In this document: piece after piece, positions 21,267-61,267 of the stretch
Layout: every line of letters starts with the position of its first letter
Numbering within the stretch: the first letter of the stretch is position 1
Sequence record: MH791411.1
DNA: 64,000 nt
Reading direction: 5' to 3' (one strand)
Notes under the pieces: generated by a model
The model's input: the letters and a program-made list of their open reading frames with translations, nothing else
The model's database searches: none
Told to the model about the DNA's origin: nothing
Program-made: the position numbers and the translations under genes

Positions 21267-21706
21267 CGTTTACCCTTATGTGCTGCACGTACATATTCAT
21301 AATCCAAATAAAATCTTGTGCTATCAATACTTTTAAAGTACCACATAATAACTAAAGTATCTAGTACTTCATCATCATACAAAGTACTATTCTGAAAGTA
21401 ATACTCTTCACTATCCCACGGACCTTTCAGTACTTCAAAGTTCAATTTTAAAGGTCTGCTGCGATTATAAAAACGGATTTCACCACCATAAGCATAACTG
21501 ATAAATTCTGCATCTGGATTGTATTGTGAAAAATCTGCGGGACTTTTGGAATTCAGCCCAAGAATAACTGTAGTTGTGGTAAAATCACTATCCTTGTAGT
21601 AGTTACCATTCTCGGCTTTGTATACTTCTTCGAACTTCCCAGCCTTGATATCTTCAATATATACCTGTAGTTCTTTTGCTTTATCCAGAGCACTTTGTAA
21701 TGACAT
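21263..21706 (-). CDS. Family A paralogue (MSxESA subfamily)
   Basis: GPWDSEEYYFQNSTL. Confidence 0.85.
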   Translation of the reverse strand: MSLQSALDKAKELQVYIEDIKAGKFEEVYKAENGNYYKDSDFTTTTVILGLNSKSPADFSQYNPDAEFISYAYGGEIRFYNRSRPLKLNFEVLKGPWDSEEYYFQNSTLYDDEVLDTLVIMWYFKSIDSTRFYLDYEYVRAAHKGKR

Positions 21707-22172
21707 TATCTTCCCCTACAGTATTCTCTACGTATTCATAATCGAAATAGAAACTATCAGAACCAATACTTTTAAAGTACCACATAATTACAATAACATC
21801 TAATTCTTCTTCATTGTACACAGTACTGTTCTGGAAGTAATATTCTTCACTATCCCACGGACCTTCCAGTACTGAATACGGAATGATTGTGTCATAATCA
21901 TCGTAATCAGGACTGTAAATTATAATATCTTCATCTCTACAATAACTAATGTACTGATTGTACATATGATATTCACAGTCATCAGTATCACCCGTATCAG
22001 TGTGTAGTACTAACGTTTCTGCACATATCTCTGACTCATCATAATCGTCGCGGTCTTTTACAAAAAATTCAGTATCAGATGTTTTATACACACCAGGCAC
22101 TGAACCTTCTTGTACCATAATCATGTACTCATGAATCTTCTTTGCTTCTTTCAATGCACTTTCTAATGACAT
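21681..22172 (-). CDS. Family A paralogue (MSxESA subfamily)
   Basis: GPWDSEEYYFQNSTV. Confidence 0.85.
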   Translation of the reverse strand: MSLESALKEAKKIHEYMIMVQEGSVPGVYKTSDTEFFVKDRDDYDESEICAETLVLHTDTGDTDDCEYHMYNQYISYCRDEDIIIYSPDYDDYDTIIPYSVLEGPWDSEEYYFQNSTVYNEEELDVIVIMWYFKSIGSDSFYFDYEYVENTVGEDNVITKCSG

Positions 22173-22174
22173 TA

Positions 22175-22615
22175 CTAATCCCCTGTACTTAAATATTCAC
22201 ATGCTCCCCAGTCAAGGAAGAAGGGTTCAAAATTCAATTCCTTAAAGTACCACAAAACAACCAAGGAATCAAGCATTTCTTGGTTAAAAATAAGACTCTG
22301 TTGGAAGTAATACTCTTCAGTACCCCACGGCCCATCAAGTACCCCGAAGTCAACAGGTGTATTTGATGTGTCAAAAGTAATCTTAGTACCTGGAATATAT
22401 ACAAAAAAACTAGTATATTGACTACATGAAGAGTACTGTATAGTATTGTCTTTATCATGGCCCATAAGTAAAATATCATCAGAGTATGTCTTTATACCTG
22501 ATAGATAATACTCATTACCAAATGCACTTACTTTATCACCATAGAAACCACTTTTTATGTTATCGTGGAAGTGATGTATTTTGTGTGCCAGTTTAAGTGC
22601 ACTTGCTAAACTCAT
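22175..22615 (-). CDS. Family A paralogue (MSxESA subfamily)
   Basis: GPWGTEEYYFQQSLI. Confidence 0.85.
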   Translation of the reverse strand: MSLASALKLAHKIHHFHDNIKSGFYGDKVSAFGNEYYLSGIKTYSDDILLMGHDKDNTIQYSSCSQYTSFFVYIPGTKITFDTSNTPVDFGVLDGPWGTEEYYFQQSLIFNQEMLDSLVVLWYFKELNFEPFFLDWGACEYLSTGD

Positions 22616-23082
22616 ATATCCTCTTTAATAACTCGTAGTAGATCCAAGTCCAAATAGAAGCTAGGACAATCTGTATTATTAAAGTACCACAGAATGACAA
22701 GCTTGTCAAGCACATATTCCTCGTAGATAGTATTCTGCTGGAAGTAGAACTCTTCACTTCCCCAGTCATTATCCAGTACTGAATACGGAAGATGTTTCTC
22801 TGCTGCACCAGTTATAATGTCAGTATATTGTATTAAAATATCAGCATCACGACAGAAGTACATGTAATTATCTTCCAGATTAACATCACACCCAGTGAGT
22901 GTTGTTTCAGAAGAATCTAAGTTTTCTTCGTACATGTGAATGTACTCACTACTGTCATCGTATATCATTCGACAATAAGCTTTACCTTCCTTGAATAGAT
23001 ACCCATTGAGTTGATTGAGTACTATTTCCTTTTTACATAAATCAATTAACTTAGCAATTTCTAATGCTCTTTCTAAACTCAT
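22612..23082 (-). CDS. Family A paralogue (MSxESA subfamily)
   Basis: DWGSEEFYFQQNTI. Confidence 0.85.
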   Translation of the reverse strand: MSLERALEIAKLIDLCKKEIVLNQLNGYLFKEGKAYCRMIYDDSSEYIHMYEENLDSSETTLTGCDVNLEDNYMYFCRDADILIQYTDIITGAAEKHLPYSVLDNDWGSEEFYFQQNTIYEEYVLDKLVILWYFNNTDCPSFYLDLDLLRVIKEDI

Positions 23083-23083
23083 T

Positions 23084-23575
23084 TTAACCCCTGTTAATAC
23101 CGTTATCTACAGTTTTCTTTACGTATTTGTAATCGAAATAGAAGTTCCCAGAACCAATACTTTTAAAGTACCACATAATTATAATAACATCAAGTACTTC
23201 ATCATCGTAAACAGTACTTTGTTGGAAGTAATACTCTTCACTATCCCACGGACCTTCCAGTACTTCACTCGGAATTATAATGTCATCGGAATCGCTATCA
23301 GTACTGTAGATGGTATCTGTATCATTAATATAGACCATGTACTCATTATGCATATTAATGAAGCATTCATAATCATTAGGGTCGGTATCCAGTACACACG
23401 TTTCTGTATCCAGTACGCACGTTTCTGTATCTGAGTCGTCATTATTAAGGAGGTTATCCGGTACATAATATTGAGTACTTGTGTCTTTGAAAACACCGTA
23501 AACTGAACCTTCTTTTGCCATATTCATGTACTCATGAATCTTCTTTGCTTTTTCCAATGAACTCTGTAATGTCAT
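23084..23575 (-). CDS. Family A paralogue (MSxESA subfamily)
   Basis: GPWDSEEYYFQQSTV; internal 7-aa duplication. Confidence 0.85.
   Translation of the reverse strand: MTLQSSLEKAKKIHEYMNMAKEGSVYGVFKDTSTQYYVPDNLLNNDDSDTETCVLDTETCVLDTDPNDYECFINMHNEYMVYINDTDTIYSTDSDSDDIIIPSEVLEGPWDSEEYYFQQSTVYDDEVLDVIIIMWYFKSIGSGNFYFDYKYVKKTVDNGINRG
23385..23431. repeat. 21-bp in-frame tandem duplication
   Basis: gtatccagtac[a/g]cacgtttct x2; encodes DTETCVL twice. Confidence 0.9.
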
Positions 23576-46483: not shown

Positions 46484-46844
46484 TTTTATTTCTCTCTCTT
46501 TGTTAGGAGGGGAACCATTCCCCTCGCTTGATGTAAACTATTATACAGTACTAAGATACTTTGTCAATACTTATTTTTTGGAAAGTTTACGCATTAATTC
46601 TACGCTTTCTTGTGAACGTTTTGCTACCTGGCAAGCTGTATGGGCAGTAAACATTTTTGTATAGTCTGACGCTTTGCCACCGAACCGAGCGGCACGTTCA
46701 CGGGCACTTGGAACTAATACTATTTCTTTATTACAGATAGTGCACTTAGCCATTTTTATTTCTCTCTCTTTGTTAGGAGGGGAACCGTTTCCCCTCACTT
46801 GATGTAAACTATTATACAGTACTAAGATACTTTGTCAATACTTA
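46477..46844. repeat. Two ~97-bp near-identical promoter cassettes flanking one gene
   Basis: 46477-46573 and 46747-46844. Confidence 0.9.
46571..46753 (-). CDS. Small Cys/His protein, possible Zn binding
   Basis: MAKCTICNK...HTAC. Confidence 0.75.
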   Translation of the reverse strand: MAKCTICNKEIVLVPSARERAARFGGKASDYTKMFTAHTACQVAKRSQESVELMRKLSKK

Positions 46845-47117
46845 AGTATTGTAAATGTCGTGAATAGTGATAAAGTTTTTACGACCGTAAACATGTAAAT
46901 CAGTATCAATGTAGTGCTTATCAAGTACATCCTCGACGCTTAAAGACGTGTCGTGAATATCTTCATAAAATTGTGGATCAACAATCGTGCTTAAGTCATC
47001 TGGCGTTAACTTATCGTTAAGGCATTGAACCGCCTGGATATCTGCTTCACGTTTCCATTGTTCCAGATTAGTAGTCAGTACTTGCTCGATTTCGTTAGCT
47101 GTAAGTAAAGTCCGCAT
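46842..47117 (-). CDS. Acidic early protein
   Basis: 91 aa, AAGGA SD. Confidence 0.75.
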   Translation of the reverse strand: MRTLLTANEIEQVLTTNLEQWKREADIQAVQCLNDKLTPDDLSTIVDPQFYEDIHDTSLSVEDVLDKHYIDTDLHVYGRKNFITIHDIYNT

Positions 47118-47185
47118 TTTAATGTTTCCTTATCAGTGGTTGATGTAAGTATTATACTCGTTTACTTTCTATTGTCAAACTATTT

Positions 47186-47262
47186 TATCAGGGGAGTTTT
47201 TCGTATGTCTTACTCCTGGACTACTTAACGGGGTTACTTATTTCGTTCCCCGTCCTGATGTA
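47186..47262 (-). ncRNA. Promoter-driven ORF-less structured RNA, copy 1
   Basis: -10 at 47267; outer ATCAGG/CCTGAT stem, ACGGGG/CCCCGT stem, GGAGT-14nt-ACTCC stem; no ATG. Confidence 0.6.
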
Positions 47263-47432
47263 AAACATTATACTTGATTCTAAGTACAATGCAAGTACTT
47301 TTTTAAAAATAGTTTTCAGTACTAGCCACCAGCAAACAATAGATACATTTATGCACCCTGTGGGCTAATTTGTTTCTATGCGTATATAATAGCAAAGGGA
47401 CTGACCGGAGTCAATCCCTTTTTCAAATATTT

Positions 47433-47582
47433 TTAAACTTCTTTCGGGTTGCGATATGTGATAGCGTTCGGGTACATTTGTTTAATGTTATTCCATGCCT
47501 GGTTAACATTATAACCACTTGATCGAATCAGTTGGTTATTACCGACACCTTGAAACACTACTTCAAATAAGAATTCTTTCAT
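47433..47582 (-). CDS. Small early protein (49 aa)
   Basis: Manual: MKEFLFEVVFQGVGNNQLIRSSG... Confidence 0.6.
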   Translation of the reverse strand: MKEFLFEVVFQGVGNNQLIRSSGYNVNQAWNNIKQMYPNAITYRNPKEV

Positions 47583-47752
47583 GCTTTCACCTCTCGATCT
47601 GCTTTGCCTTTACGCCAGGCCGTTGCTAATTGTTCGCGTTGCCATAAGTCGAGTGATACGTAAAGTTTTGCATTATCACCCTTCGGATATTCGCCAGTAG
47701 TACCAATCCGATAAAACAGATCTTTCAGTACTGTTAATTCTACCTGGACCAT
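47579..47752 (-). CDS. Small early protein
   Basis: Start reassigned to MVQVEL. Confidence 0.7.
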   Translation of the reverse strand: MVQVELTVLKDLFYRIGTTGEYPKGDNAKLYVSLDLWQREQLATAWRKGKADREVKA

Positions 47753-47839
47753 TATACTTTCCTCTTTGTTAGGAGGGGAACTATTCCCCTTCCGATATAA
47801 AACATTATACACTTTATTCAGTACTGTGCAAGTACTTTT

Positions 47840-48052
47840 TTAATCTTTCAGCCAATGATCCTGAATGAATTTTTCACCGGAACCTTGCTGCATTGATTGT
47901 AACAGACGTTCGCGATGAGCGGCGGCGAATTGCTCAGTACTATGCGTTACACCTGGTTGATATCTGGATTCACCATTTGGGGCGATGTATTGTACATCCC
48001 ACGGTTTTTCGTTAGTATCAGACCATTTACGAACGATTAGTTGACCTTGCAT
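47840..48052 (-). CDS. Early hypothetical protein
   Basis: Own promoter cassette. Confidence 0.75.
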   Translation of the reverse strand: MQGQLIVRKWSDTNEKPWDVQYIAPNGESRYQPGVTHSTEQFAAAHRERLLQSMQQGSGEKFIQDHWLKD

Positions 48053-48135
48053 TTTTCTTTCCTCTTAGTGGGGAGAATCATTTCTCCCCTTCATGTAAAC
48101 TATTATACAGTACTGGATTGCATTGTCAATAGTTT

Positions 48136-48459
48136 TTATTCACCTTGTTTGAATATAGTTTTCTCCATTGATTCCATGATTGCAACCAATACAGCATGGA
48201 TCTCACTTAACGCGGCATCACTAAAAGCATTAATGAATAGGCAATCATTCTCGCGAATATTTTTAATGTACTTATCAGCAGTGGTTGCGAATTCATTCAA
48301 CGGCAGATCAAATGCTTTATCCCATAATGGATGGCGTAACTGTAACAGTACTGGATTATCACGATCACCAGGGGAAAACGTACCAGTGATGAAACATACG
48401 CCCGGAATACTTTCGAACTGGCAACGGACTTCCTTTGTGATAGTAGTATGAATGTACAT
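48136..48459 (-). CDS. Early hypothetical protein
   Basis: GAGG SD. Confidence 0.75.
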   Translation of the reverse strand: MYIHTTITKEVRCQFESIPGVCFITGTFSPGDRDNPVLLQLRHPLWDKAFDLPLNEFATTADKYIKNIRENDCLFINAFSDAALSEIHAVLVAIMESMEKTIFKQGE

Positions 48460-48486
48460 TTATTGTTATCCTCTATTAAATTAATA

Positions 48487-48675
48487 TTACAGTTTATGAA
48501 TTAATTCTTTATCTAAGCGATAGCGTACATTATTAATGGTAACAGCATTATTTTTAATGCTACGCTGTACGGGTCCACCAGCAATAACAAACGTTGCTTT
48601 ATTGCCCCGAACAATGATAGCACTTCCAGGATTACCGAAATCATCTTGTACTAAAATACTTGATAAGTTTTCCAT
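48487..48675 (-). CDS. Early hypothetical protein
   Basis: 62 aa; Chi at 48575. Confidence 0.7.
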   Translation of the reverse strand: MENLSSILVQDDFGNPGSAIIVRGNKATFVIAGGPVQRSIKNNAVTINNVRYRLDKELIHKL

Positions 48676-48753
48676 TTTTATTTCCTCTTAGTAGGGGAAG
48701 ATGTTTCCCCTTGATGCAAGTACTATAACAGTACTGAAAACTAAATGCAAGTA

Positions 48754-49110
48754 CTATGATAAAATCATGATAGGATATTCACTATCTATCAATACCTCGA
48801 ATCCGAAACCTTCGTACCATTCTTTAAGATTAAAGGCGTTATCTTCTCCCGTATCGCATTCTAAGATGATACAATCTGAATCATCGGCGGCATCAATAAA
48901 GGCATTCATTAATTCGTTACCTTCACCATTGCCCCGACTATCAGGATCAACATAAAGAGAATCAATAAACGCTACACGGTCATAATCAAGATCCGGTGCA
49001 ATGATTCCACGTTTAACAAACCAGTACTGCAATTGTGCTACTTTGCCCTGTACTTGATAGCCAGTGATCTCGCCATTGTCAGTAGTACGCGTGATATGTT
49101 GTATTCCCAT
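48754..49110 (-). CDS. GNAT-family acetyltransferase
   Basis: IDSLYVDPDSRGNGEGNELM (acetyl-CoA motif A), WYEGFGF. Confidence 0.85.
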   Translation of the reverse strand: MGIQHITRTTDNGEITGYQVQGKVAQLQYWFVKRGIIAPDLDYDRVAFIDSLYVDPDSRGNGEGNELMNAFIDAADDSDCIILECDTGEDNAFNLKEWYEGFGFEVLIDSEYPIMILS

Positions 49111-49173
49111 GATTACTATCCTCAGTTAAGATATAAAACATTATACACTATCTTTCAGTACTGTCAATACTTT

Positions 49174-49431
49174 TTATCTCATAGATCTATGCCAACAATT
49201 ACGCGGATCTCTTTTAAAAGTACTATCATGATCCTCCTGGCAAGTAATACAATACATGCACCCTATAACGGCCTGGCGTCGATTCTCAGGGATTTTATCG
49301 CCGCAGTCGAGGCAATGTACAAGTGATTCTCTTTGTGCGTTAATTTGCTTTCTAGCGTGGTTAACGGCGGCCTGAATCACTGCATGAATCTCGTCTTGTT
49401 CGGCCCCGTCTTTCGCGTATCCTACTGCCAT
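49174..49431 (-). CDS. TraR/DksA-family C4 zinc-finger protein
   Basis: GYAKDGAEQDEI (acidic tip), CLDCGDKIPENRRQAVIGCMYCITCQ. Confidence 0.9.
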   Translation of the reverse strand: MAVGYAKDGAEQDEIHAVIQAAVNHARKQINAQRESLVHCLDCGDKIPENRRQAVIGCMYCITCQEDHDSTFKRDPRNCWHRSMR

Positions 49432-49760
49432 TATTTTAACCTCATTATAAAAATACTATAGTACTGTAATGCTACAATAATACTACTAGTGTTTATCTTA
49501 TTCAAACCATATGATACTACATATCCACCAGCATTACCACGAATAGTAACGCCTTTGTACTGTCTATATAAATTCAACTGCGTATATTGCCTTTGATCAA
49601 GAATTGATCAGAATTATACGCCTTATGCTAAATTGATCCAGTACTTTTTTGATCATTTATTGATCGATATTATATAGTTACATTTGTGCACCCTATGGGT
49701 TAGTGACGTTCTCGTCTTGATGTAAGTATTATGCCAGTACTGGAGGATATTGTCAATAGA

Positions 49761-49964
49761 TTATTTTAATTTTTTTCTGTCATTGATTAATGCTTTCAGT
49801 ACTATACTAATAACTTGCAATGATTCATCAATGACAATGAAATTATTCTCTTTCATTAGATGATAGTTACCATTGATTGTATATTCTAACGAGTACTGTT
49901 TACGTTTAATTTTTGATAATGTTTCTATTTGTTTTTGTACTGATTTCATGCTAATCATTGTCAA
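49761..49964 (-). CDS. Small hypothetical protein
   Basis: 67 aa, start uncertain. Confidence 0.5.
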   Translation of the reverse strand: MTMISMKSVQKQIETLSKIKRKQYSLEYTINGNYHLMKENNFIVIDESLQVISIVLKALINDRKKLK

Positions 49965-50063
49965 ACGTCCTGTAACGCATTCTAACGAGATAAACGGTTT
50001 AGTACTGGCATTGTATAGGGTAAATGATTAAAGCCCACCAGCGTTAACCAGTGGGCTATAATA

Positions 50064-50207
50064 TTACATCTTGCGGATAATCTTAACAGTATCTTTCACC
50101 GATTTACCGTTTTGCTGACATTGCTCGATCATCGCGTATTGTTCTGCGGTCAGATCCTCGCCAGTTTTTGCCAGTACTGCGTCGATGAATGAATCCAGTG
50201 CGATCAT
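50064..50207 (-). CDS. Small early protein (47 aa)
   Basis: Manual: MIALDSFIDAVLAKTGEDLTAEQY...; followed by AGCCCAC/GTGGGCT terminator. Confidence 0.65.
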   Translation of the reverse strand: MIALDSFIDAVLAKTGEDLTAEQYAMIEQCQQNGKSVKDTVKIIRKM

Positions 50208-50297
50208 TTTATTTCTCTCTTAGGTTAAGTTAACTACTGTTTATAAAACTTATTATACAGTACTATCAATCTATGTCAATAGTACTGGTAATATATT

Positions 50298-50477
50298 TTA
50301 GCGGTAGTCGTCGTATGCTTTATTCACCTGGCGAATATAACTTTCAAAGGCTTCGTCTACCGTTTCATACTCCCGAACATAATCACCATATGAAACTACA
50401 TACATACCTTTTTGATCTTCAAACGTCATGATGATAGAATCCAGACCAACGATTTCAGTTTTTGCGATGATAGCCAT
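50298..50477 (-). CDS. Small early protein (59 aa), weak paralogue of 53416-53628
   Basis: Manual: MAIIAKTEIVGLDS...YVVSYGDYVREYETVDEAF. Confidence 0.65.
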   Translation of the reverse strand: MAIIAKTEIVGLDSIIMTFEDQKGMYVVSYGDYVREYETVDEAFESYIRQVNKAYDDYR

Positions 50478-50560
50478 TTTTTAATTCCTTAGTAGTGTAG
50501 TTGATAAAAGTTATTATGTCAGTACTATCAAACTATGTCAATAGTACTGTGATAATATTT

Positions 50561-50773
50561 TTAGTTAATGATAGTCAGTGTAAAATTGTAATCACCGCAG
50601 CGATATAGCACGTTATTCCCAAATGTCCCAACTAATCGCACATCACACAAAACGCCGGTTTTTTCTTTTACTTCCTTGATACTTGTAACTCCTGTAATAT
50701 CTTTATTAAAGTATTCATGATCTGAAAATAAAACTTGTTTTGCATTTTTTAATTTCGACCGGATATTAGCCAT
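50561..50773 (-). CDS. Early hypothetical protein
   Basis: Own promoter cassette. Confidence 0.75.
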   Translation of the reverse strand: MANIRSKLKNAKQVLFSDHEYFNKDITGVTSIKEVKEKTGVLCDVRLVGTFGNNVLYRCGDYNFTLTIIN

Positions 50774-50869
50774 TTTGTTTTCTCTCTCTGTTAGTGGGGA
50801 GAAGTTTTTCTCCCCTTGATGTAAACTATTATACAGTACTATAATCTATTGTCAAACTATTTTTTTATA

Positions 50870-51211
50870 TTATTCGAAATCTTCTGGACCGGACTGATAA
50901 TCATCTTCACCGTATGCACTTTCTAACCGCTCGCCAGTGTGATCATCAGTTAGTGAGTCATCCTCATAGTTCACGTCTACGCCAGTGATGTAAAACTGGC
51001 TATCGTCTGGATCATTGAAATTAATTTTCTGTATGTTTACAATAACTGTATTGATGCCCAGGACACCGCCATCAGCCGTTACAAAGTACTGATAGTTTTC
51101 GCAACCGCCTGAATTGAAACCGTAATTAATTTCGGCCCGACCATCATTTAAACGCAGTGCCTGGGCGATGATTTCGTTTTCAAAGTTAGATTGAGCAATT
51201 GAGATAGTCAT
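50870..51211 (-). CDS. Acidic conserved-type phage early protein
   Basis: YFVTADGG...VNYEDDSLTDDHTGERLESAYGED. Confidence 0.8.
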   Translation of the reverse strand: MTISIAQSNFENEIIAQALRLNDGRAEINYGFNSGGCENYQYFVTADGGVLGINTVIVNIQKINFNDPDDSQFYITGVDVNYEDDSLTDDHTGERLESAYGEDDYQSGPEDFE

Positions 51212-51433
51212 GATTTGTTTCCTTATTACCAGGGGAAACCGTTTCCCCCTCTCGATGTAAAACATTATACGCTTATTGAGATAGTTTGCAAGTACTTTCT
51301 ACAAATACTTTTAAAATAGTTTTCAGTACTCAATACTCATATAATAGATACACTTATGCACCCTGTGGGCTAGTGAGCTATCTCTCAATGAATATATAAT
51401 AGCAAAATGGCTGACCGGAGTCAACCACTTTTT

Positions 51434-51577
51434 TCATTTATTTTTAGCTTTTAGAATCGCCGCCTTTCGCGTCATGCCTTGCTTGATGTATTCTTGTACT
51501 TTCGCTTTACGTGCATTCGCTTTATTTGCTTTCGTAAATGCCGAACAACTTTTATAGTTTAAACCTGTTGGATTCAT
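51434..51577 (-). CDS. Small basic protein (47 aa)
   Basis: Manual translation MNPTGLNYK...KAKNK. Confidence 0.55.
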   Translation of the reverse strand: MNPTGLNYKSCSAFTKANKANARKAKVQEYIKQGMTRKAAILKAKNK

Positions 51578-51667
51578 TTAAATCACCATAAAGAATAGAT
51601 AGGTTACTAACAACGCCGCGATCAATGCACCGACCAGGGCCGAACTATAGTAAGCTAATGTTTTCAT
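51578..51667 (-). CDS. 29-aa single-TM peptide
   Basis: Manual: MKTLAYYSSALVGALIAALLVTYLFFMVI. Confidence 0.55.
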   Translation of the reverse strand: MKTLAYYSSALVGALIAALLVTYLFFMVI

Positions 51668-51816
51668 TTTTTAGCCTGAAAGTAATGTTTAATTTGAGCG
51701 GCGGTCAGTGCACAATTACGCAGGAAGTTTTCTGTATAACTGCGGCGAGTACTGAAAGAGAATTGACCTTTGCCGTTACCGATAGTAACATCAAACCGAG
51801 CGTTGTATTGTTTCAT
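51664..51816 (-). CDS. Small early protein
   Basis: Start reassigned to MKQYNA. Confidence 0.65.
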   Translation of the reverse strand: MKQYNARFDVTIGNGKGQFSFSTRRSYTENFLRNCALTAAQIKHYFQAKK

Positions 51817-51897
51817 TTTGATTCTCCTGTTATTGGGGAGAATCATTTCTCCCCTTCATGTAAAACATTATACAGTACTAAAAACTAATTGCAAGTA

Positions 51898-52044
51898 CTA
51901 TTTTTTAGATTTACGCAAACTTTCTACCATCTCAGGAGTAAGGCCCGGCGGGTAGGAAACTACTTCATCAACGAAACGTAAAGGGAATACCCCAGCGAAA
52001 GGTGAACGTGCTTTCTTAGTATTACTCTTTTTTGATGCTTTCAT
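51898..52044 (-). CDS. Small early protein (48 aa)
   Basis: Manual: MKASKKSNTKKARSPFAG...; own promoter cassette. Confidence 0.6.
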   Translation of the reverse strand: MKASKKSNTKKARSPFAGVFPLRFVDEVVSYPPGLTPEMVESLRKSKK

Positions 52045-52113
52045 TTCATATTCCTTAATTAGTGGGGAGAATCATTTCTCCCCTTCATGTAAAACATTAT
52101 ACGCGTTTAAAAA

Positions 52114-52323
52114 CTAATTGCAAGTACTATTTGAAAGTAAATGCTCATACGCTGCATTAACTACGTTTTCAATAACCGACTGTACAGAAAGATCCCCCAC
52201 GTCCTGGCTATAGTAGAAATCGCTTACAGTGGTGTCATCGTATGCAAATACTTTACCAGGTACTGCATCAATCACATACATATTAACCTTTAAGATGTCG
52301 ATCTTATCCTGTACAGTAAGCAT
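52114..52323 (-). CDS. Early hypothetical protein
   Basis: 69 aa. Confidence 0.7.
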   Translation of the reverse strand: MLTVQDKIDILKVNMYVIDAVPGKVFAYDDTTVSDFYYSQDVGDLSVQSVIENVVNAAYEHLLSNSTCN

Positions 52324-52328
52324 ATTAA

Positions 52329-52601
52329 TTAACCTTTTAAGTACTGGCTTAAGTAGTCTTGTTGATCTTCGGTGATTGCAGCCATCTTCCCTAGTACTGG
52401 ATTAATGATATAATCCCCTGTAACGTCCTGTAACGCATTCTCAGGCGGTTTAACGGCTGGGGTAGCCATAGCCATCGCCTGGACTTGTTCGACGCTATAA
52501 CGCTCATATAGGCGGCATTCTTCCGGTGTTAACATAGCATCAATGCGTTTCATTGGTTTAATGATGCTTTCAACTTCATTCAGTACTTGATTAACGTTCA
52601 T
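52329..52601 (-). CDS. Early hypothetical protein
   Basis: 90 aa. Confidence 0.75.
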   Translation of the reverse strand: MNVNQVLNEVESIIKPMKRIDAMLTPEECRLYERYSVEQVQAMAMATPAVKPPENALQDVTGDYIINPVLGKMAAITEDQQDYLSQYLKG

Positions 52602-52652
52602 GGTATAATCCCCAATATAAGCGGCCTGAATCGACCGCTAACGATGTTTTGA

Positions 52653-52922
52653 TTAATAGGTGTATGGTTGACGTTCAAACAATGATTGCACGTTGTACGC
52701 CCCACTAATGGGCTTTGCTGGTAAATCAATTTTATATTGCTCACGCTTAAAGATAATAAAACGGCAATTGTTTTTAACATCAAAATTGATTGAACGTTCC
52801 AGTAGTTTACCATCGTGCACAAATACAAGATAACCGCTCGCTACTTGTTTTGTAGTACTGGTTGCAACCATAGACCGCCGAACATGTGTACCTGCGTCGA
52901 TTAAAGTACTGATATTTTTCAT
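52653..52922 (-). CDS. Early hypothetical protein
   Basis: 89 aa, GAGG SD. Confidence 0.7.
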   Translation of the reverse strand: MKNISTLIDAGTHVRRSMVATSTTKQVASGYLVFVHDGKLLERSINFDVKNNCRFIIFKREQYKIDLPAKPISGAYNVQSLFERQPYTY

Positions 52923-53002
52923 TATACGTTCCTCTTAAGTTAATTTAATTTCTTTCCCCTATGCAGACACTATATCAAAGTATCTGCATAAAGTAAAGCT
53001 AA

Positions 53003-53326
53003 TTAAAGATCTTTTTTGCGTTTAACATTCTGTACAGTACAATGCAACGGGATATTAAGATCATTGCACAAACGAGTAAGGGAGGTTTCATCAGTATTAA
53101 GCCCGTCTACTGATTCCTTTAATAGATCTAACGCCGTTTGTTGATATGCATCTTCATAGCCATAAGTAAATGATTCAACCGCCAGATCATTCAAACCGTT
53201 ATCCAGTTCGACGCTTACATGACAAGAATGATAAGTATTGCCATATGAATCAGTCCAACGTTTACCGTCAACATTGATTGCACGGATTGCAGCCAGGGAA
53301 ACGGTGTTAATGATAGTTTTAGCCAT
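53003..53326 (-). CDS. Early protein, paralogue of 46160-46483
   Basis: RWTDSYGNTYHSC. Confidence 0.8.
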   Translation of the reverse strand: MAKTIINTVSLAAIRAINVDGKRWTDSYGNTYHSCHVSVELDNGLNDLAVESFTYGYEDAYQQTALDLLKESVDGLNTDETSLTRLCNDLNIPLHCTVQNVKRKKDL

Positions 53327-53415
53327 TTTTGTATTCCTTAAATTAATATGTTGTCTTGATAAAATCTATTATGCCAGTACTATCAAACTATGTCAATAGT
53401 ACTGTGATAATATTT

Positions 53416-53628
53416 TTACTTACTTTCTTTCGCTGCTTTGTGCGTTGCCACTGCCATAACCACATCAGCACGAACAAAGTTTTTAACCGTGTCGCTGTAA
53501 TAATTGATCGCTTCATCAATATCTGCGAACATCCGATACATACCGCACCACGATACTTTATAACCTGCTTTCACTTCTTCCAGCTTAACCAGTGATTTGT
53601 TAACTTTGATTTTAGTAATGATAGCCAT
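53416..53628 (-). CDS. Early hypothetical protein
   Basis: Flanked by ~75-bp direct repeats of a promoter (about 53350-53420 and 53643-53715). Confidence 0.75.
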   Translation of the reverse strand: MAIITKIKVNKSLVKLEEVKAGYKVSWCGMYRMFADIDEAINYYSDTVKNFVRADVVMAVATHKAAKESK

Positions 53629-53707
53629 TTTATTTTCCTCAGTTGTCTTGATAAAATCTATTATGCCAGTACTATCAAACTATGTCAATAGCACTGTGAT
53701 AATATTT

Positions 53708-53851
53708 TTACTTACTTTTTGCTTTCTTGATTGCTTCCACCTGGTCGGCCCATTCTTTACCCCATACTTGTAAATTATAATGGTACTGGCAAAGAGCAAC
53801 GCCCCGCTTTAAACCCGTAATAGATTTCTGACCACATTGACAAGTTTTCAT
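53708..53851 (-). CDS. Small Cys-rich protein (47 aa)
   Basis: Manual: MKTCQCGQK...ALCQYH. Confidence 0.6.
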   Translation of the reverse strand: MKTCQCGQKSITGLKRGVALCQYHYNLQVWGKEWADQVEAIKKAKSK

Positions 53852-53937
53852 TTTAGTTTCCTTGTAGTGGGGAGAACCATTTTCTCCCCTTGATGTAATG
53901 TATTATACTTTATTCGATTTACTTTGCAAGTACTTTT

Positions 53938-54165
53938 TTAATTTAATTCATCAAGGCAAAGGATACGCTCAACGCCCAAATCAGTTAAACTAATCGACGG
54001 CACTTGATAGGTTTCAATGTATGCTACACTTGCCCACTGACCGAACTCATTAACGGCCCAGGTATTCATTGCATTTTGCAATTCCGCACCTTCCTTGTTG
54101 GTAATGACTGCAACTACTTGTTCGTTGCCAGTAGTACCAGATACGCGAGTAATGATAATAGCCAT
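53938..54165 (-). CDS. Early hypothetical protein
   Basis: Start reassigned to MAIIIT. Confidence 0.7.
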   Translation of the reverse strand: MAIIITRVSGTTGNEQVVAVITNKEGAELQNAMNTWAVNEFGQWASVAYIETYQVPSISLTDLGVERILCLDELN

Positions 54166-54450
54166 TGTTTTGATTCCTTTGATTTGGAAGGAGAACCGTT
54201 TCCCCCTCTCGATGTAAAACATTATACGCTAATCTCTTAATCGTGCAAGTACTTTTTATTACTTTTTGCAAAATACTTTAAACGCTCTCAATCGCGTTCT
54301 TACAGCCTTAACGCCACCAGCTAGGGCAATGCATCAGATAATCAGTTTAATGCGTTAGAATCGTTTCTAGGCGGTGCTGGTGGCATGGTAAACGATAAAC
54401 ACAAAAAAGCCCACCGTTTAAGGTGGGCTAGTGATTCAGTACTTTAATTG

Positions 54451-54933
54451 TTATGCTTCAACTTTGCGATGAGATTCGATCCATTCCTCGCGAGTCATAC
54501 CGCTGGCGTTAATCGCGTCCAGTACTACCGCAATGCAGTTACCACGCACCGGAATCAGATATTCTTCCCCGTTGTCCAGTACTACCGCTACGCGTTCCTG
54601 AATCCATTTTTTGGCTTTTACTTCTGGCTTGTCTTCCCCATACTTAACCGCCAGGGCTTTTTGTGCCATCTCTGTAACTACTTCCAGATCCAATCCAACT
54701 ACTGCCGCCTGAATACTTTCGATTGTTGCTTGTAGTTCTGCTTCACGGGCCGCCTTTGCCGCTTCAATTTCTGCCGCTTTATTTGCTTGTAGTTCTTTCG
54801 CAGTACTGTACGCGATGTTAAAATTATTGCGTACCGCTTTCATGGTATCGTTATCCAGTTCAGCCAGGATCTCAGCCGCGACGTTAGTTTCATTTGCTAC
54901 CAGTGCTTTGATGAATGATTTTACATTAGCCAT
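54451..54933 (-). CDS. H-NS/StpA-like protein with altered DNA-binding motif
   Basis: Coiled-coil N-terminus; C-terminus KAK..DNGE.7.GNCIAVVLDAINASGMTREEWI aligns by eye to H-NS KAK..ENGE.7.[22 protein letters not shown]. Confidence 0.65.
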   Translation of the reverse strand: MANVKSFIKALVANETNVAAEILAELDNDTMKAVRNNFNIAYSTAKELQANKAAEIEAAKAAREAELQATIESIQAAVVGLDLEVVTEMAQKALAVKYGEDKPEVKAKKWIQERVAVVLDNGEEYLIPVRGNCIAVVLDAINASGMTREEWIESHRKVEA

Positions 54934-54997
54934 TTTATAAATCCTCAATTAAAGTTTAGTTTACGTTTATTAGTGTATCAAAGTTTTCTCGACGTGT

Positions 54998-55050
54998 CCA
55001 GTTTTTCGTTCGACTTACTGGCGGTCTACTTAGTGCTCCCCGTCTTGATG
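54998..55050 (-). ncRNA. Structured RNA motif, copy 3 (5' leader of H-NS-like gene)
   Basis: CCAGT-AAGTCGAACGAAAA-ACTGG; compensatory version of copies 1 and 2. Confidence 0.6.
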
Positions 55051-55166
55051 TAATACATTCTACGCTTTTCTGCGGTAATGTCAACTACTTTCTTAAAACT
55101 ATTTTCAAAGTATCTCAGTACTACGATACTACAAAAACAAAAAAGCCCACCAGGTGGGCTATGTAC

Positions 55167-55397
55167 TTAATCAGTGAGTAAAATATTAAACACTTTACCA
55201 TTTAACGTTATTGGTGCACTGCTACCAGGCACAAGATCCGTTAGTATACCTGCAATCGCTTTATCATTGGCTACCTTTCCAGTGTCCAACAGTACTACAG
55301 TACTGATAAGATTAACGCTCGTTTCAATATCATAATGCACGGCGTTAAGTAGTTGTGTAGTACTGCTTTCGTTAAGTAAAACAATTCGCTTAGTCAT
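55167..55397 (-). CDS. Early hypothetical protein
   Basis: 76 aa, followed by terminator at ~55137-55160. Confidence 0.65.
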   Translation of the reverse strand: MTKRIVLLNESSTTQLLNAVHYDIETSVNLISTVVLLDTGKVANDKAIAGILTDLVPGSSAPITLNGKVFNILLTD

Positions 55398-55418
55398 GAT
55401 GTTACCCCGTAGTATCTA

Positions 55419-55718
55419 TCAACGGCAATTAATAACGCCGGTATGAGTTACTTTCTCGGTATCCATTACAGTGACCGAACCGCGTTTAGCACTGGCATCA
55501 TAATAAATTGTCGTGCTACCGTTTTCGTCTTCTTCATGGAACGGGCCGTTTTTAAATGCTTCCGGCTGGATCTCTAAATCCTTTAATACAATCTCGCCAG
55601 TTCTTTCATCGGTCATTGCAACAGTGCACTGAATGAATTTTTCACTACTTACATCTAATGACGCATTAACAGCGAAAGAGGAAACAGATAAAGCCAGGGC
55701 GATGATTGCAATTTTCAT
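55419..55718 (-). CDS. Secreted/periplasmic protein
   Basis: Sec signal MKIAIIALALSVSSFAVNA. Confidence 0.75.
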   Translation of the reverse strand: MKIAIIALALSVSSFAVNASLDVSSEKFIQCTVAMTDERTGEIVLKDLEIQPEAFKNGPFHEEDENGSTTIYYDASAKRGSVTVMDTEKVTHTGVINCR

Positions 55719-55802
55719 TTGATTATCCTTAGTTACCAGGGGAAACCGTTTCCCCTTGCGATGTAAAATATTATACAGTACTAAAAACTAATTGCAAGTA
55801 CT

Positions 55803-56039
55803 TTATGATTTTTTATAAAACATTTCAGCAGTGATATTTTTACCCGTTGGCTGTACTTTATCCAGAATTTTTTGATGCCCTGGTCGTCCAAAGGAATATG
55901 ATCCGTAAACAGTAAACCAGTAGTTACCCTCAGTGTTTACATGTACAGCACAATAAGGAACACCACGCGATTCATCACTAGTAAAGTGTGATACCGTTCC
56001 CGTTACATTCGCAGACGTTGATTTGATTTGTTCGACCAT
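55803..56039 (-). CDS. Early hypothetical protein
   Basis: Own cassette. Confidence 0.75.
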   Translation of the reverse strand: MVEQIKSTSANVTGTVSHFTSDESRGVPYCAVHVNTEGNYWFTVYGSYSFGRPGHQKILDKVQPTGKNITAEMFYKKS

Positions 56040-56147
56040 TTTCTTATTCCTTAGTTACCAGGGGAACCGCTCCCCCTATGCAAAACATTATACGCGTTTA
56101 AAAACTAATTGCAAGTATTTTAATAAAAAGTATTTGAAAAATAGTTG

Positions 56148-56216
56148 TTGACAAGTGCATCCAGTACTGGCATAATTACTACATCAAGACGAAACAGTCA
56201 CTAACCCACCGGGTGC
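56148..56216 (+). promoter_or_regulatory. Antisense sigma70 promoter with RCCC-hairpin, no ORF
   Basis: TTGACA-17-CATAAT; AACCCACCGGGTGC at 56203. Confidence 0.75.
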
Positions 56217-56282
56217 CGAGATCCGTCTATTAAATGATTCAGTACTGAAAAAGTAACGGGGAGTTATTATCTCCCCGTGTTG

Positions 56283-56504
56283 TTATTTTGTAAGGTATAA
56301 ACAGAAGTCGCCTTTATTTGCTACGCCGCCAGTGTAACGCGAGGAATAGTTAGAAACGTCCTGGACTTCTGCTATTACCAGGGTATCATCATTCAATTCG
56401 TCGCAGAAGCAAACGGCTGGATCTTGTACGCCGATTTTGTCGGCATGTTCCCGCATAGATTTAACCAGTGCTTCCAGTTGGGAAAGAGTAGTGATATTAG
56501 CCAT
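56283..56504 (-). CDS. Early hypothetical protein
   Basis: Start reassigned to MANITT. Confidence 0.7.
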   Translation of the reverse strand: MANITTLSQLEALVKSMREHADKIGVQDPAVCFCDELNDDTLVIAEVQDVSNYSSRYTGGVANKGDFCLYLTK

Positions 56505-56588
56505 TTTATTTTCCTCATTACCAGGGAGAACCATTTCTCCCTTTGATGTAAACCATTATACAGTACTGAAAACTAATTGCAAGTACTT

Positions 56589-56777
56589 TTAATTAAATTC
56601 CATAAAATCATTTTCAACGTGCACAACAATCTGATTATTTTTAAAGGACGCAGAAAACTCTATACAATCATAAACCGCTTTTTCTGTTACCAGACTATGA
56701 GCACCAATCGGATTAATTGGGGATTGAATTGTTTCAATCTCGTTACCTTGTTCATTAACGATTAAAATATTAAACAT
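56589..56777 (-). CDS. Early hypothetical protein
   Basis: AGGAG SD. Confidence 0.7.
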   Translation of the reverse strand: MFNILIVNEQGNEIETIQSPINPIGAHSLVTEKAVYDCIEFSASFKNNQIVVHVENDFMEFN

Positions 56778-56816
56778 TGCCGTTACTCCTGGATAGTGTT
56801 AACTCGATATAAAGTA

Positions 56817-56999
56817 TTATACGCCTTTATTGCTTAGTGTCCAGTGATCACGCATCATACGCCCCGCACGATCCCAGCTAGTAGGCATGGGTATGCCTTG
56901 CAATTCGTTAGGGGAGATCTCGACCTCGATCCCTACATCAATAACAGTCATTCCAGCTTTCGCAGCTTGCTCGCGGATAACCTCAGATAATGTTGTCAT
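56817..56999 (-). CDS. Early hypothetical protein
   Basis: AGGAG SD. Confidence 0.7.
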   Translation of the reverse strand: MTTLSEVIREQAAKAGMTVIDVGIEVEISPNELQGIPMPTSWDRAGRMMRDHWTLSNKGV

Positions 57000-57073
57000 G
57001 ATTAAAGCTCCTGGATAGTGTTAACTCGATATAAAGTATTATACAGTACTGAAAACTAATTGCAAGTACTTTT

Positions 57074-57334
57074 TTAATATTGTTTGTCGTCGTCTTCCTC
57101 GATGAATTGACCGACGAAATGATCTACTTTCGCTTTGAGGCTTTTATAATCTTCTTCTACTTCCGTTAAACGTTCCTGGTAGTATTCCAATGCTTCAAGA
57201 TACGCCGCCTCAGCAGTTTTTGCACGCATAGCTAAATTCATTCCACGCGTTTCATCAAATAGCCAATAACCATCGGTGCACTGGCTAATAGATAATGACT
57301 TGCTTAGTACTGTATAGCTAATTACTTTACTCAT
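57074..57334 (-). CDS. Conserved-type phage early protein
   Basis: SQCTDGYWLFDETRGMNLAMRAKT. Confidence 0.8.
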   Translation of the reverse strand: MSKVISYTVLSKSLSISQCTDGYWLFDETRGMNLAMRAKTAEAAYLEALEYYQERLTEVEEDYKSLKAKVDHFVGQFIEEDDDKQY

Positions 57335-57391
57335 TAGATAACCCTCAGTAAAGGCGGGAACTATTACCCGCCATTATCTCAGTACTGAATA

Positions 57392-57631
57392 TTACATTCC
57401 AACCATTGCAGCACGGATCGCAGTAGTGCTATACTTAAAGCCGTCCGGCGTTGTAGTAGTACCGTTGGCTTTTAATCTGCGGTACATACATTCCGCAGCA
57501 ATATCTTTAGTTCTACTTTGTGCGATGCAACTTTGAGCAAGCCGATACAATGACTCACCGTTATTAATCCAAAGGCTTACATTCCAATGAGTTTTGTTTT
57601 TGTGTCCGTTGTAAGTTTTAGTACTAGCCAT
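57392..57631 (-). CDS. Early protein, paralogue of 59432-59671
   Basis: YNGHKNKTHWNVSLWINN...TPDGFKYSTTAIRAAMVGM. Confidence 0.8.
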   Translation of the reverse strand: MASTKTYNGHKNKTHWNVSLWINNGESLYRLAQSCIAQSRTKDIAAECMYRRLKANGTTTTPDGFKYSTTAIRAAMVGM

Positions 57632-57721
57632 TTTTAAATCCTCGTTTGAGCGGGGAACCACTCCCCGCCTCGATATAAAGTATTATACGCTTTTAAACTT
57701 AGTTTGCAAGTACTTTTTAAA

Positions 57722-58333
57722 TTAATATTCGATTGATTCCACTACGCCATCAATAACATTGAATTGATACTCGTTACCCTCAATCAGTGCCGTAATGTTT
57801 TCAGTAGTGAATTGATCCTCATATGCATTCTCTAAATCACGGTACAACTTGCGGGACAATTCACGAATAGTTTCAGTGAGTAGTTCCTCAAGCTCATTAA
57901 CTAACGTTTCTTGTTTTGCGGTTAAATCAGTGTAAGCCGATTCAATGTACCCGCTTACAGTATTCTCATGCGAGTAGTGGGAGTGCGAACGTTTTACACT
58001 CATCGCCAAATCATCTTCATTCAGCAAGTGACGGATTGAGCGATACTTAGTTAATGCTCTTACCTTGCGTAAAAACTTCACTGCGTCAACGTGGTCAGTA
58101 CTGATTGATGCACCGTCACCCTGGGACCAAAAACCACTGAATTGTATTTCAGCGTCATTAATGCCATATTCCGGTAGTACTGTTTCTTTATAGTATTCAA
58201 TTTCACTTTCAGAAAAATAATTGTCGTTTGAGTTTTTTTCACGTTCCCGAACCAGTTCGATAGCTGACGTTTGTTGTTCTGCGTTCAATTCAGAAAAAGC
58301 CATAACATAAGTAGTAGTAGTGATAGTTTTCAT
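57722..58333 (-). CDS. Protein of family often annotated as toxin-antitoxin antitoxin
   Basis: TYVMAFSELN..FSGFWSQGDGAS..LYRDLENAYE; family recalled, function unproven. Confidence 0.55.
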   Translation of the reverse strand: MKTITTTTYVMAFSELNAEQQTSAIELVREREKNSNDNYFSESEIEYYKETVLPEYGINDAEIQFSGFWSQGDGASISTDHVDAVKFLRKVRALTKYRSIRHLLNEDDLAMSVKRSHSHYSHENTVSGYIESAYTDLTAKQETLVNELEELLTETIRELSRKLYRDLENAYEDQFTTENITALIEGNEYQFNVIDGVVESIEY

Positions 58334-58400
58334 TTTGTAACCCTCATTCAGTAGTTGATGTAAGTATTATACGCTTTTAAAAACATTTGTCAAACTATTT

Positions 58401-58478
58401 TATCAGGGGAGTTTTTCGTGTGCCTTACTCCTGGGCTACTTAACGGGAAGTTACTTATTTCGTTCCCCGTCCTGATGT
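58401..58478 (-). ncRNA. Promoter-driven ORF-less structured RNA, copy 2
   Basis: Near-identical to 47186-47262; -10 at 58484. Confidence 0.6.
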
Positions 58479-58557
58479 AAAACATTATACGCCTTTAAAC
58501 ATAGTTTGCAAGTACTTTTTAAAAATAGTTTTCAGTACTGAATAGTAAAAAAAAGTA

Positions 58558-58730
58558 TTGACAGCATTATCAAGTACTGGTATAATATACCCCATGACAA
58601 CAGCTAACCCACCGGGTGCACAATTGTAACTATACTAAACTAATTTTTCTATAGATACACTCCCGCACCCTATGGGCTACGGCTTATCTGCCAATGAATA
58701 CATTATGCCAGTACTGACAAAATAAGTCAA
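58558..58730. promoter_or_regulatory. Convergent promoter pair, each followed by an RCCC-hairpin
   Basis: + TTGACA-17-TATAAT (58558/58581), motif 58606; - TTGACT-17-CATAAT (58725/58702), motif 58665. Confidence 0.8.
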
Positions 58731-58760
58731 TACCGGCAATTGTAAAGATTTGTAAACTGC

Positions 58761-58991
58761 TTATACTGCAATCGCGTCCAGGCTATAATAATAATAAGTG
58801 CCGTATTGGTGTACTTTATTACCTTTTATTTCAGTACTGAATGAATCCGAACGGTTTGCATATGATGTTAATTTAAAGTACTTTGATTTGCTGATACGTT
58901 GCCATACACCACAGATCCGCTGTAAGTAAGTAGTTTTATTCGTGGTAGTATCTTTTACGGTTTTAACTTCAGTCATATACATATTAGTCAT
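58761..58991 (-). CDS. Early hypothetical protein
   Basis: Own cassette. Confidence 0.7.
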   Translation of the reverse strand: MTNMYMTEVKTVKDTTTNKTTYLQRICGVWQRISKSKYFKLTSYANRSDSFSTEIKGNKVHQYGTYYYYSLDAIAV

Positions 58992-60956: not shown

Positions 60957-61100
60957 TTAGCCGTCTATACTTCCAGACGTGTAACCATCTAGCCGTTTAG
61001 CCGTCCAAACGTCTAGCCATCCAGCCATCCAGAAATCTAGCCGTTTAGCCGTCTAGATGGATAGCCATCTTTACTTCCAGACTTCTGGAGGGCTAGACAT
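60957..61100. repeat. 18 in-register degenerate 8-bp units
   Basis: ttagccgt ctatactt ccagacgt gtaaccat ctagccgt ttagccgt ccaaacgt ctagccat ccagccat ... ctagacat. Confidence 0.85.
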
Positions 61101-61267
61101 ATCTACGCCCAAAATCCATCCAGGGTAACTACGCCCAAAATCCGTCAGTACTATACCATAGATCTATCTTTTGAAAGGGAGTATTCAGTACTGCCATCAT
61201 AGCCCTCACTATGTTACCCTAGGAGGATGAAGACCATCATGTAGTACTGAATACTGTTAGAGGGAAT

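Follow-up and report, generated by a model that had tools for sequence, protein, structure and literature searches.

Three copies of an RNA motif in the early region of a jumbo coliphage

This study concerns a small RNA motif encoded in a 64,000-nt stretch of sequence record MH791411.1 (the whole of which is referred to as the window). At 99.7% identity the window matches Escherichia phage Ecwhy_1, an Asteriusvirus, i.e., a jumbo coliphage of the 121Q/PBECO4 type with a genome of around 350 kb, and its position 47186 is position 295186 of the record. Between about 40.7 and 61.5 kb it is occupied by small genes, all on the minus strand and nearly every one supplied with its own promoter cassette, and exactly three copies of the motif lie among them, also on the minus strand, at 47259-47187 (copy 1), 58476-58402 (copy 2) and 55044-54991 (copy 3). 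All three are members of a single RNA family, small and pseudoknotted, that has not been described before. An earlier, sequence-only reading of the window had proposed a covarying structured RNA at the same place, with two copies acting as free-standing small RNAs and the third as the leader of an 'H-NS-like' gene; the first part of this proposal is borne out below, the second is not.

Four elements make up the common core of the motif: the helix P1, which closes it, a single-stranded UAAGUAG that does not vary, a hairpin of 5-6 bp (P3) and a pseudoknot of 3 bp. The P3 loop is 14 nt long, with the consensus AAG-N-C-NN-A-N-GAAA(A), and the pseudoknot joins a G-N-C that starts with the last G of UAAGUAG to a G-N'-C in the loop; copies 1 and 2 have an extra hairpin, P2. 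The 35-nt core pattern TAAGTAGNCCNSSAGTAAGNCNNACGAAAAACTSS has three exact matches in the window (47193-47227, 54998-55032 and 58408-58442) and none in 100 dinucleotide-preserving shuffles. A covariance model, which the sequence-only reading had suggested as a check, was built and run over the 64 kb with filters off; it returned only the three copies, at 59.3, 59.1 and 51.0 bits for copies 1, 2 and 3, and the next match scored 10.4 bits. The rest of the window yielded no further copy, and neither did the 42 kb that follow it downstream in the Ecwhy_1 record. The strings quoted in the sequence-only reading all occur on the minus strand where it had placed them, and the exchange of GG/CC for CC/GG in the stem between copies is real. 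The shared sequence CATCARGACGGGGA is also present, although it is partly generic, since CATC and a G-rich start follow most early promoters of the region.

Copy 1 (minimum free energy -21 kcal/mol, z = -3.15) is closed by P1, in which AUCAGG (47259-47254) pairs with CCUGAU (47192-47187). The optional P2 pairs ACGGGG (47253-47248) with CCCCGU (47233-47228), the junction UAAGUAG occupies 47227-47221, and the pseudoknot is formed by the 5' strand G-U-C (47221-47219) and G-A-C of the loop (47209-47207). P3 consists of GGAGU (47216-47212) and ACUCC (47197-47193) around a 14-nt loop (47211-47198). The outer promoter, at 47267-47294 (TTGCAT, 16 nt, TATAAT), belongs to repeat family D1 of the early promoters; it was read directly, having been missed by a simple promoter scan because its -35 hexamer matches at only 3/6 positions. 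The predicted start site at about 47261-47259 would place P1 at about +1 to +3 of the RNA. Thirteen nt after the motif there is a 12/12 inner promoter (47151-47178; TTGACA, 16 nt, TATAAT), and behind it a gene for a 91-aa protein (phrog_14947; 47117-46842).

Copy 2 (-19.4 kcal/mol, z = -2.0) has the same P1 sequences, AUCAGG/CCUGAU, at 58476-58471 and 58407-58402, and in the fold prediction this helix encloses two hairpins in both copies; as had been noted, neither contains an ATG, GTG or TTG. The junction of copy 2 lies at 58442-58436 and P3 at 58431-58427 with 58412-58408, while the variable pseudoknot pair is C58435 with loop G58423. Its outer promoter (58484-58511; TTGCAA, 16 nt, TATAAT) scores 10/12 and its inner promoter (58366-58393) 12/12, the latter again 13 nt after the motif and followed by a gene for a 203-aa protein (phrog_5162; 58333-57722). 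Copy 3 is a short form without P2, of a kind also seen in phages LTH01 and Hallingskeid. Here P1 is GACG (55044-55041) with CGUC (54994-54991), the junction occupies 55032-55026, P3 is CCAGU (55021-55017) with ACUGG (55002-54998), and A55025 pairs with loop U55013 in the pseudoknot. A terminator-like hairpin (55160-55144) precedes the outer promoter (55057-55084; TTGACA, 16 nt, TAGAAT; 11/12). Downstream of the copy come a decayed inner promoter (54953-54981; TTGATA, 17 nt, TAAACT; 9/12), whose position is homologous to that of the other two inner promoters, then a gene for a 160-aa protein (phrog_27871; 54451-54933) and a terminator (54429-54408).

The order of outer promoter, motif, inner promoter and gene is thus common to all three copies; the sigma70-like promoter expected ahead of the motif is present each time, and the motif begins within a few bases of its start site. 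The division into two free-standing small RNAs and one leader does not hold: no terminator-like site follows copy 1 or 2 (46800-47400 and 58200-58800 were scanned), an inner promoter and a gene come after both, and the layout at copy 3 is the same. With one architecture throughout, the copies cannot be read as decoys on the one hand and target on the other. All three are predicted to be the 5' part of transcripts from the outer promoters, and as no terminator follows the motif, these transcripts would continue through the inner promoter into the gene.

Several other features of the window were recorded. About 40 small genes on the minus strand between 40700 and 61500 carry near-identical cassettes (repeat families D1-D8) that resemble mobile regulatory cassettes of the PeSL type, with the order A-tract, GTAC, TTGCAA/TTGACA, 16-17 nt, TATAAT, GTTTTACATC, a short GC hairpin (GGGGAGAA..UUCUCCCC) and a ribosome-binding site. 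They are similar to the RpoD-like early promoters reported in Rak2-like phages (PMC5259590), and their initial transcribed sequence, CATCGAGAGGG, is similar to that of T7 promoter A1. A block of about 30 nt (AGCCCAYAGGGUGC...UGUAUCUAU, minus strand) precedes the outer promoter both at copy 1 (47340-47370) and at copy 2 (58655-58690), so that the duplicated unit extends beyond the motif. Just upstream of the copy 2 outer promoter, the plus strand carries an extended -10 sigma70 promoter (58558-58586; TTGACA, 17 nt, TG-TATAAT; 12/12) directed against all neighbouring genes, and this may give rise to an antisense or divergent small transcript. At 60962-61113 there is an array of about 150 nt with an 8-nt period (CGTCTAGC / CATCCAGC / CGTTTAGC ...; repeat family D12), a possible iteron-like or protein-binding array. 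Five tandem paralogous units of about 440 bp each (repeat families D5 and D10) lie at 21300-23300, and related short repeats dispersed across 9-34 kb suggest, together with them, an expanded gene family. No tRNA or tmRNA gene was found by ARAGORN in 40000-64000.

Structure and covariation

That the motif is a real, conserved, pseudoknotted RNA can be stated with high confidence. In the cross-group alignment (A2; 34 distinct sequences from at least six phage groups), 93% of the P3 cells are paired and the four central pairs are paired in every sequence. Three of the pairs have changed on both sides (CG/GC; CG/GC/UA; UA/AU), and the covariation score and percentage paired of P3 were reached by none of 500 shuffles; with the partner columns slid, pairing falls to 35-46%. 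The base after UAAGUAG and position 4 of the loop covary perfectly, as AU in 25 sequences, CG in five and UA in four with no unpaired cells, and the fourth combination, GC, is found in locus L107. Since this pair is flanked by an invariant G-C on one side and by C-G (in one case U-G) on the other, the three together join the junction to the loop in a pseudoknot of 3 bp.

In the alignment of T7-like sequences (A3), 15 pairs were assessed and eight had two-sided changes, against 1.2 +/- 1.0 in shuffles. Five of the covarying pairs are in P1, which takes the forms GUCAA/UUGAC, GUGAA/UUCAC, GCUAA/UUAGC, GAUUAG/CUAAUC, GUCGGU/ACCGAC and GUCAUC/GAUGAC, and the helix is retained at five loci (L024, L076, L015, L110 and L111) where it does not overlap a -35 hexamer. 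The 5' arm of P1 in these phages lies inside the loop of a small 4-bp hairpin, S1, which itself covaries (CCGG/CCGG, CCAG/CUGG, CCAC/GUGG, GCGG/CCGC and others); this constitutes a second pseudoknot, and the T7-like versions are doubly pseudoknotted. The lineages outside the T7 group have short closing helices that differ from one another: AUCAGG/CCUGAU, GACG/CGUC, GACGG/CCGUC, CGGC/GCCG and CAACGAA/UUCGUUG. A covarying, structured, non-coding RNA, as suggested by the sequence-only reading, is supported.

The strand is indicated by G-U pairs (16 + 1 + 1 cells), which fit only the strand transcribed from the flanking promoters. The stems vary freely, and the bases that do not vary are unpaired ones, namely UAAGUA in the junction and AA, A and GAAA in the loop, a combination that excludes a plain site in duplex DNA. 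It is the pattern known from RNAs that bind a partner or form a pocket. A protein-binding motif, as had been proposed, is in keeping with unpaired bases of this type; the further step, that the bound protein regulates the 'H-NS-like' mRNA, is unsupported.

No known family was recognised, in agreement with the sequence-only reading. The whole window gave no match to Rfam 15 at the gathering threshold, and at E<=10 there was again no credible match, only three at chance level around copy 1 (13.9-18.4 bits, the thresholds being 43-52.7) and one at the T7-like leader. Two other ideas about the locus were set aside: a hammerhead-like CUGAUGA/GAAA reading of the flanks was ruled out on inspection and by Rfam, and a three-frame stop-codon insulator was ruled out as just two frames are closed.

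Distribution, promoter context and linked genes

The search of phage genomes that had been suggested proved informative, as BLAST located the motif in 485 phage records, mostly T7-like and with a single copy per genome. The hosts of the carriers are Escherichia, Klebsiella, Salmonella, Yersinia, Enterobacter, Citrobacter, Serratia and Pantoea, and the carriers include the classic phages T7 and T3. In T7 the motif lies at 536-596, between the annotated E. coli promoters A1 (498) and A2 (626), and the 3' arm of P1 doubles as the A2 -35 hexamer. Other carriers are Asteriusvirus, Justusliebigvirus, the Vequintavirinae phage LTH01, the Munch-like phage 7t3 and the Erwinia jumbo phage Hallingskeid. 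Matches to the core of copy 3 lie in T7-group Yersinia phages, Munch-like jumbo phages of Salmonella and Klebsiella, Hallingskeid and LTH01. A pattern scan of IMG/VR and metagenomes gave about 70 true instances, nearly all T7/T3-like, after about 30 chance matches of the relaxed pattern in IMG/VR had been removed by requiring the stem; a first, strict pattern had found none in IMG/VR. The motif is absent from all 5,426 complete E. coli genomes examined, and 185,579 species, each represented by one genome, yielded two matches: a T7-like contig in a metagenome-assembled genome, and one that lacks the stem and is taken to be fortuitous. No extra copy lies between A2 and A3 in T7-like phages.

Copy 1 provides an example of transfer. 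With its inner promoter and the 91-aa gene it is about 95% identical to a locus in the 146-kb Justusliebigvirus muut, where homology begins at the -10 region of the outer promoter. The common module of about 480 bp, comprising the motif, the inner promoter, the 91-aa gene and the next promoter (L001 2380-2960, window 46800-47300), indicates a recent exchange between two virulent phages that are not related, one of its boundaries lying inside a promoter.

In every case the motif is co-oriented with an early promoter and lies just downstream of it. At 61 of 63 distinct loci a second sigma70-like promoter (at least 9/12, usually with a perfect TTGACA) lies within 130 nt downstream, the distance from motif to inner -35 varying from 0 to 45 nt. 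The RNA would be made by the host sigma70 RNA polymerase; of the two tandem early promoters, the upstream one would yield transcripts that have the RNA as their first 50-100 nt. The clear exceptions are LIMEzero-like podophages, in which the motif is part of a 5' untranslated region (UTR) with a single promoter and is followed, after 17-32 nt, by a boxA of the ribosomal RNA operon (rrn) type and then by the first gene. T7 has a perfect boxA as well, at 813-824 (L117 434-445), after A3 in the same leader and about 220 nt from the motif. A nut site would have a boxA (GCTCTTTAACAA or CGCTCTTA) adjoining its hairpin. The boxA of T7 and that at locus L039 (4166-4177) are perfect copies of GCTCTTTAACAA, and LIMEzero has the variant GCTCTTTATACAA (L116 919-931). 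The occurrence of boxA in T7-like and LIMEzero-like early leaders points to a possible involvement of Nus factors in the early transcription of podophages.

The genes behind the motif are unrelated to each other within the Ecwhy_1-type phage, and in T7 the following gene is 0.3/ocr, so that a private regulatory loop between copies and one mRNA is unsupported. The proposal that decoy copies titrate a regulator of the 'H-NS-like' mRNA, in the manner of CsrB, is unsupported for a similar reason: the carriers are mostly T7-like, have the motif once per genome, and where checked have a different first gene. One linkage does persist. In Munch-like and in Hallingskeid-like jumbo phages the motif is likewise followed by a homologue of phrog_27871, and the association with this 160-aa family, conserved in three groups of jumbo phages, is an old one. 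The family (phrog_27871 / phrog_20181; also L075:1358-1951 and L088:1880-2503) has a long helix, a C-terminal beta-hairpin and two helices. The label 'H-NS-like' found no support in Pfam, NCBIfam, a PDB sequence search or Foldseek. Pfam Histone_HNS matched none of 11 homologues at E<=10, and a single homologue matched the model of the N-terminal domain at E = 0.22; the 160-aa protein gave no H-NS signal with NCBIfam and no sequence match in PDB. Its AlphaFold2 model (pLDDT 75) gave no Foldseek match at E<=0.001 and no H-NS among the 50 best matches listed. By eye the C-terminus recalls H-NS, a resemblance that no method confirmed and that serves as a lead only.

Possible functions and relation to known systems

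Given its presence in about 500 other phage genomes, the motif is probably of general use at the very onset of infection and not the private regulator of one gene. The same unpaired bases are kept in phage families that are unrelated and have nothing in common but enterobacterial hosts; the partner would therefore be a host component, and we infer that the motif may serve as a docking module for a conserved one. The mode of action favoured here, itself doubtful, is a co-transcriptional action in cis on the host elongation complex, similar to that of put or nut. The nascent motif would act on the polymerase that is making it, or on the Nus-factor complex of that polymerase; transcripts from the outer promoter would gain processivity and resist Rho, pauses and terminators, and those from the inner promoter, lacking the motif, would remain ordinary. 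It is favoured because the motif, wherever it occurs, opens an early transcript of the host polymerase, because it accompanies boxA in podophage leaders, and because it would explain the two promoter classes as sources of modified and unmodified polymerases. Several findings weigh against it. The three leaders of the window have no boxA, the matches within two mismatches being at chance level in the window. In T7 the motif is present only on A1 transcripts, and those from A2 and A3 of the same operon lack it, which would be odd if antitermination were essential. P1 is short in the lineages outside the T7 group and individually weak (z about 0 to -3.3). The covariance model (R1), run with filters off on the whole HK022 genome, had its best match, of 11 bits, at 13.7 kb and none in the early-promoter region or at the put sites. 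Finally, the near-universal inner promoter is left unexplained, and a self-contained unit of promoter plus RNA fits at least as well.

Such a unit leads to a close rival of the cis-acting leader, a decoy or anti-defence RNA acting in trans, which is somewhat unlikely in its own right. The outer promoter would make the motif RNA as the first product of infection, with no need for translation; released by processing, the RNA would titrate or inhibit a host protein (an RNA-binding regulator, a nuclease or an immune sensor), and the inner promoter would free the downstream gene from it. The independence of the motif from the identity of the downstream gene would then be natural, as would the separate and often perfect inner promoter, the three copies in the jumbo phage, the confinement to phages, and the location in T7 behind A1, the first annotated E. 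coli promoter from the left end, and unpaired bases that do not vary are a usual mark of protein recognition. RNase III cuts the early RNAs of T7 ahead of gene 0.3, which would free the leader. No terminator and no established processing site follows the motif, however; the LIMEzero-like motif sits in an ordinary 5' UTR with no second promoter, and there are no GGA repeats of the CsrB type, no tandem repeats of the ToxI type and no Rfam match. A 5'-stabiliser, a riboswitch or ribozyme, and a role at the level of DNA are each less likely than the cis-acting leader and the decoy. As a structural cap, a compact pseudoknot at the 5' end would shield outer-promoter mRNAs from 5'-end-dependent decay (RppH, or RNase E access and scanning), the conserved bases serving the fold. 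P1 of the myophages does lie within about 3 nt of the predicted start site, the ordinary early cassettes of the window have a plain GC hairpin at the same place, of which the motif could be an upgraded version, and the A-rich 3' part of the loop is of the type that packs into the helix groove in H-type pseudoknots. Such a cap is nonetheless improbable, given that the T7-like motif begins at about +39 with another hairpin before it, that simple hairpins are evidently enough for some 40 neighbouring genes, and that conservation across phage families exceeds the usual demand of stability alone.

Two further explanations concern the nature of the element itself. The junction and loop could form the ligand pocket of a small-molecule riboswitch aptamer or the active site of a small self-cleaving ribozyme; 50-75 nt with nested helices, one or two pseudoknots, invariant unpaired bases and covarying stems would suit an aptamer or a ribozyme of the twister or pistol type. 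This is rather improbable: no riboswitch or ribozyme of Rfam 15 matched even at E<=10, there is no expression platform (a terminator or a helix sequestering the ribosome-binding site), and the downstream genes are unrelated. Least probable is a role at the level of the DNA, the motif being either a site that serves the inner promoter (UP-like or factor-binding, for instance) or a functionless by-product of recombination between promoter cassettes. The motif is indeed nearly always upstream of a promoter, the 3' arm of P1 and the A2 -35 hexamer coincide in T7, and the boundary of the exchange between muut and Ecwhy_1 is at promoter sequences, which is also a feature of PeSL shuffling (PMC2839356). 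Neither a duplex-DNA site nor junk would, however, be expected to show three or four helices with compensatory changes and a pseudoknot pair in all four Watson-Crick forms, and the variable distance to the inner -35, the upkeep of P1 at the five loci where no overlap exists, and the LIMEzero-like copies without an inner promoter all argue the same way.

A broader prospect, possible rather than probable, is that the motif represents a new functional class of RNA, gone unnoticed in the T7 A1 leader: the first molecule made by a T7-type phage or jumbo coliphage on entry, which would act on its own, binding a host protein (the polymerase, Rho, RNase E or an immune sensor, for example) so as to disable or re-program it, or would instead be a sensor of a small molecule or a self-cleaving RNA. 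Few viruses have been studied as thoroughly as T7 and T3, yet an RNA of about 60 nt has stood unannotated between A1 and A2 of T7; it has as many as four helices that covary and some 20 unpaired bases that never change, and it recurs in at least five other phage groups. The feature tables, where given, of the 485 records show no RNA or regulatory element at the motif, only a few hypothetical-protein calls over the site, and searches of the accessible literature by sequence string and keyword turned up the T7 stretch in the role of promoter or template only, none of the papers covered describing it as an RNA element. The motif may be among the 8,495 candidate viral RNAs of an automated catalogue (PMC10690425). 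Its conservation among phages with only enterobacterial hosts in common suggests that it engages a target in the host within the first seconds of infection, and identifying this target could bring to light an unrecognised form of phage control over host transcription, RNA decay or immunity. The motif is amenable to direct tests in laboratory T7 and E. coli K-12, and it is a possible compact, portable leader part for synthetic biology.

Among known systems, the CsrB/RsmZ sponges share the idea of a conserved RNA loop that binds, and can titrate, a protein, but the motif has no GGA in its loops, occurs once and not many times per RNA, lacks a terminator and is not a separate gene. The preQ1, SAM-II and guanidine-III aptamers, the pseudoknot of the T4 gene 32 leader and ToxI are similar in that a hairpin loop pairs with a flanking single strand, with an A-rich segment free to make groove contacts and a size of 35-75 nt. 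The motif differs from these small H-type pseudoknot RNAs in having no Rfam match, no linked class of genes, no tandem 36-nt repeats and no toxin gene. PeSLs are simple promoter/terminator-hairpin cassettes of T4-type phages (PMC2839356, PMC4122927), and the window resembles them in having a hyperplastic early region of small genes with repeated promoter-plus-hairpin cassettes, and a motif-gene module exchanged between phage families with its boundary in promoter sequence. The generic cassettes of the region and the exchange with muut thus correspond to the PeSL type, but the motif exceeds that definition by its invariant unpaired bases, its pseudoknot, its covarying helices and a conservation well beyond one phage group.

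The proposed action in cis is modelled on the nut and put sites. In some podophages the motif resembles the nut sites of lambdoid phages and rrn operons as a leader hairpin near boxA: it is upstream of boxA by 17-32 nt in LIMEzero-like phages and in the same leader in T7. It differs from boxB in its loop, its junction and its pseudoknot, the three window copies differ from nut in that no boxA was found at them, and to our knowledge no N-like protein is known in the phages that carry it. The put sites of HK022 are phage-encoded, promoter-proximal, multi-helix elements of about 65-75 nt on early transcripts of the host polymerase, as the motif is, and they act in cis on the transcribing enzyme, as the motif is proposed to do. 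A put site consists of two stem-loops without a pseudoknot, and with no match of the model at the HK022 sites, the likeness is one of logic and not of homology. We rate the motif as a new family of a known broad kind, the structured RNAs of phage early leaders.

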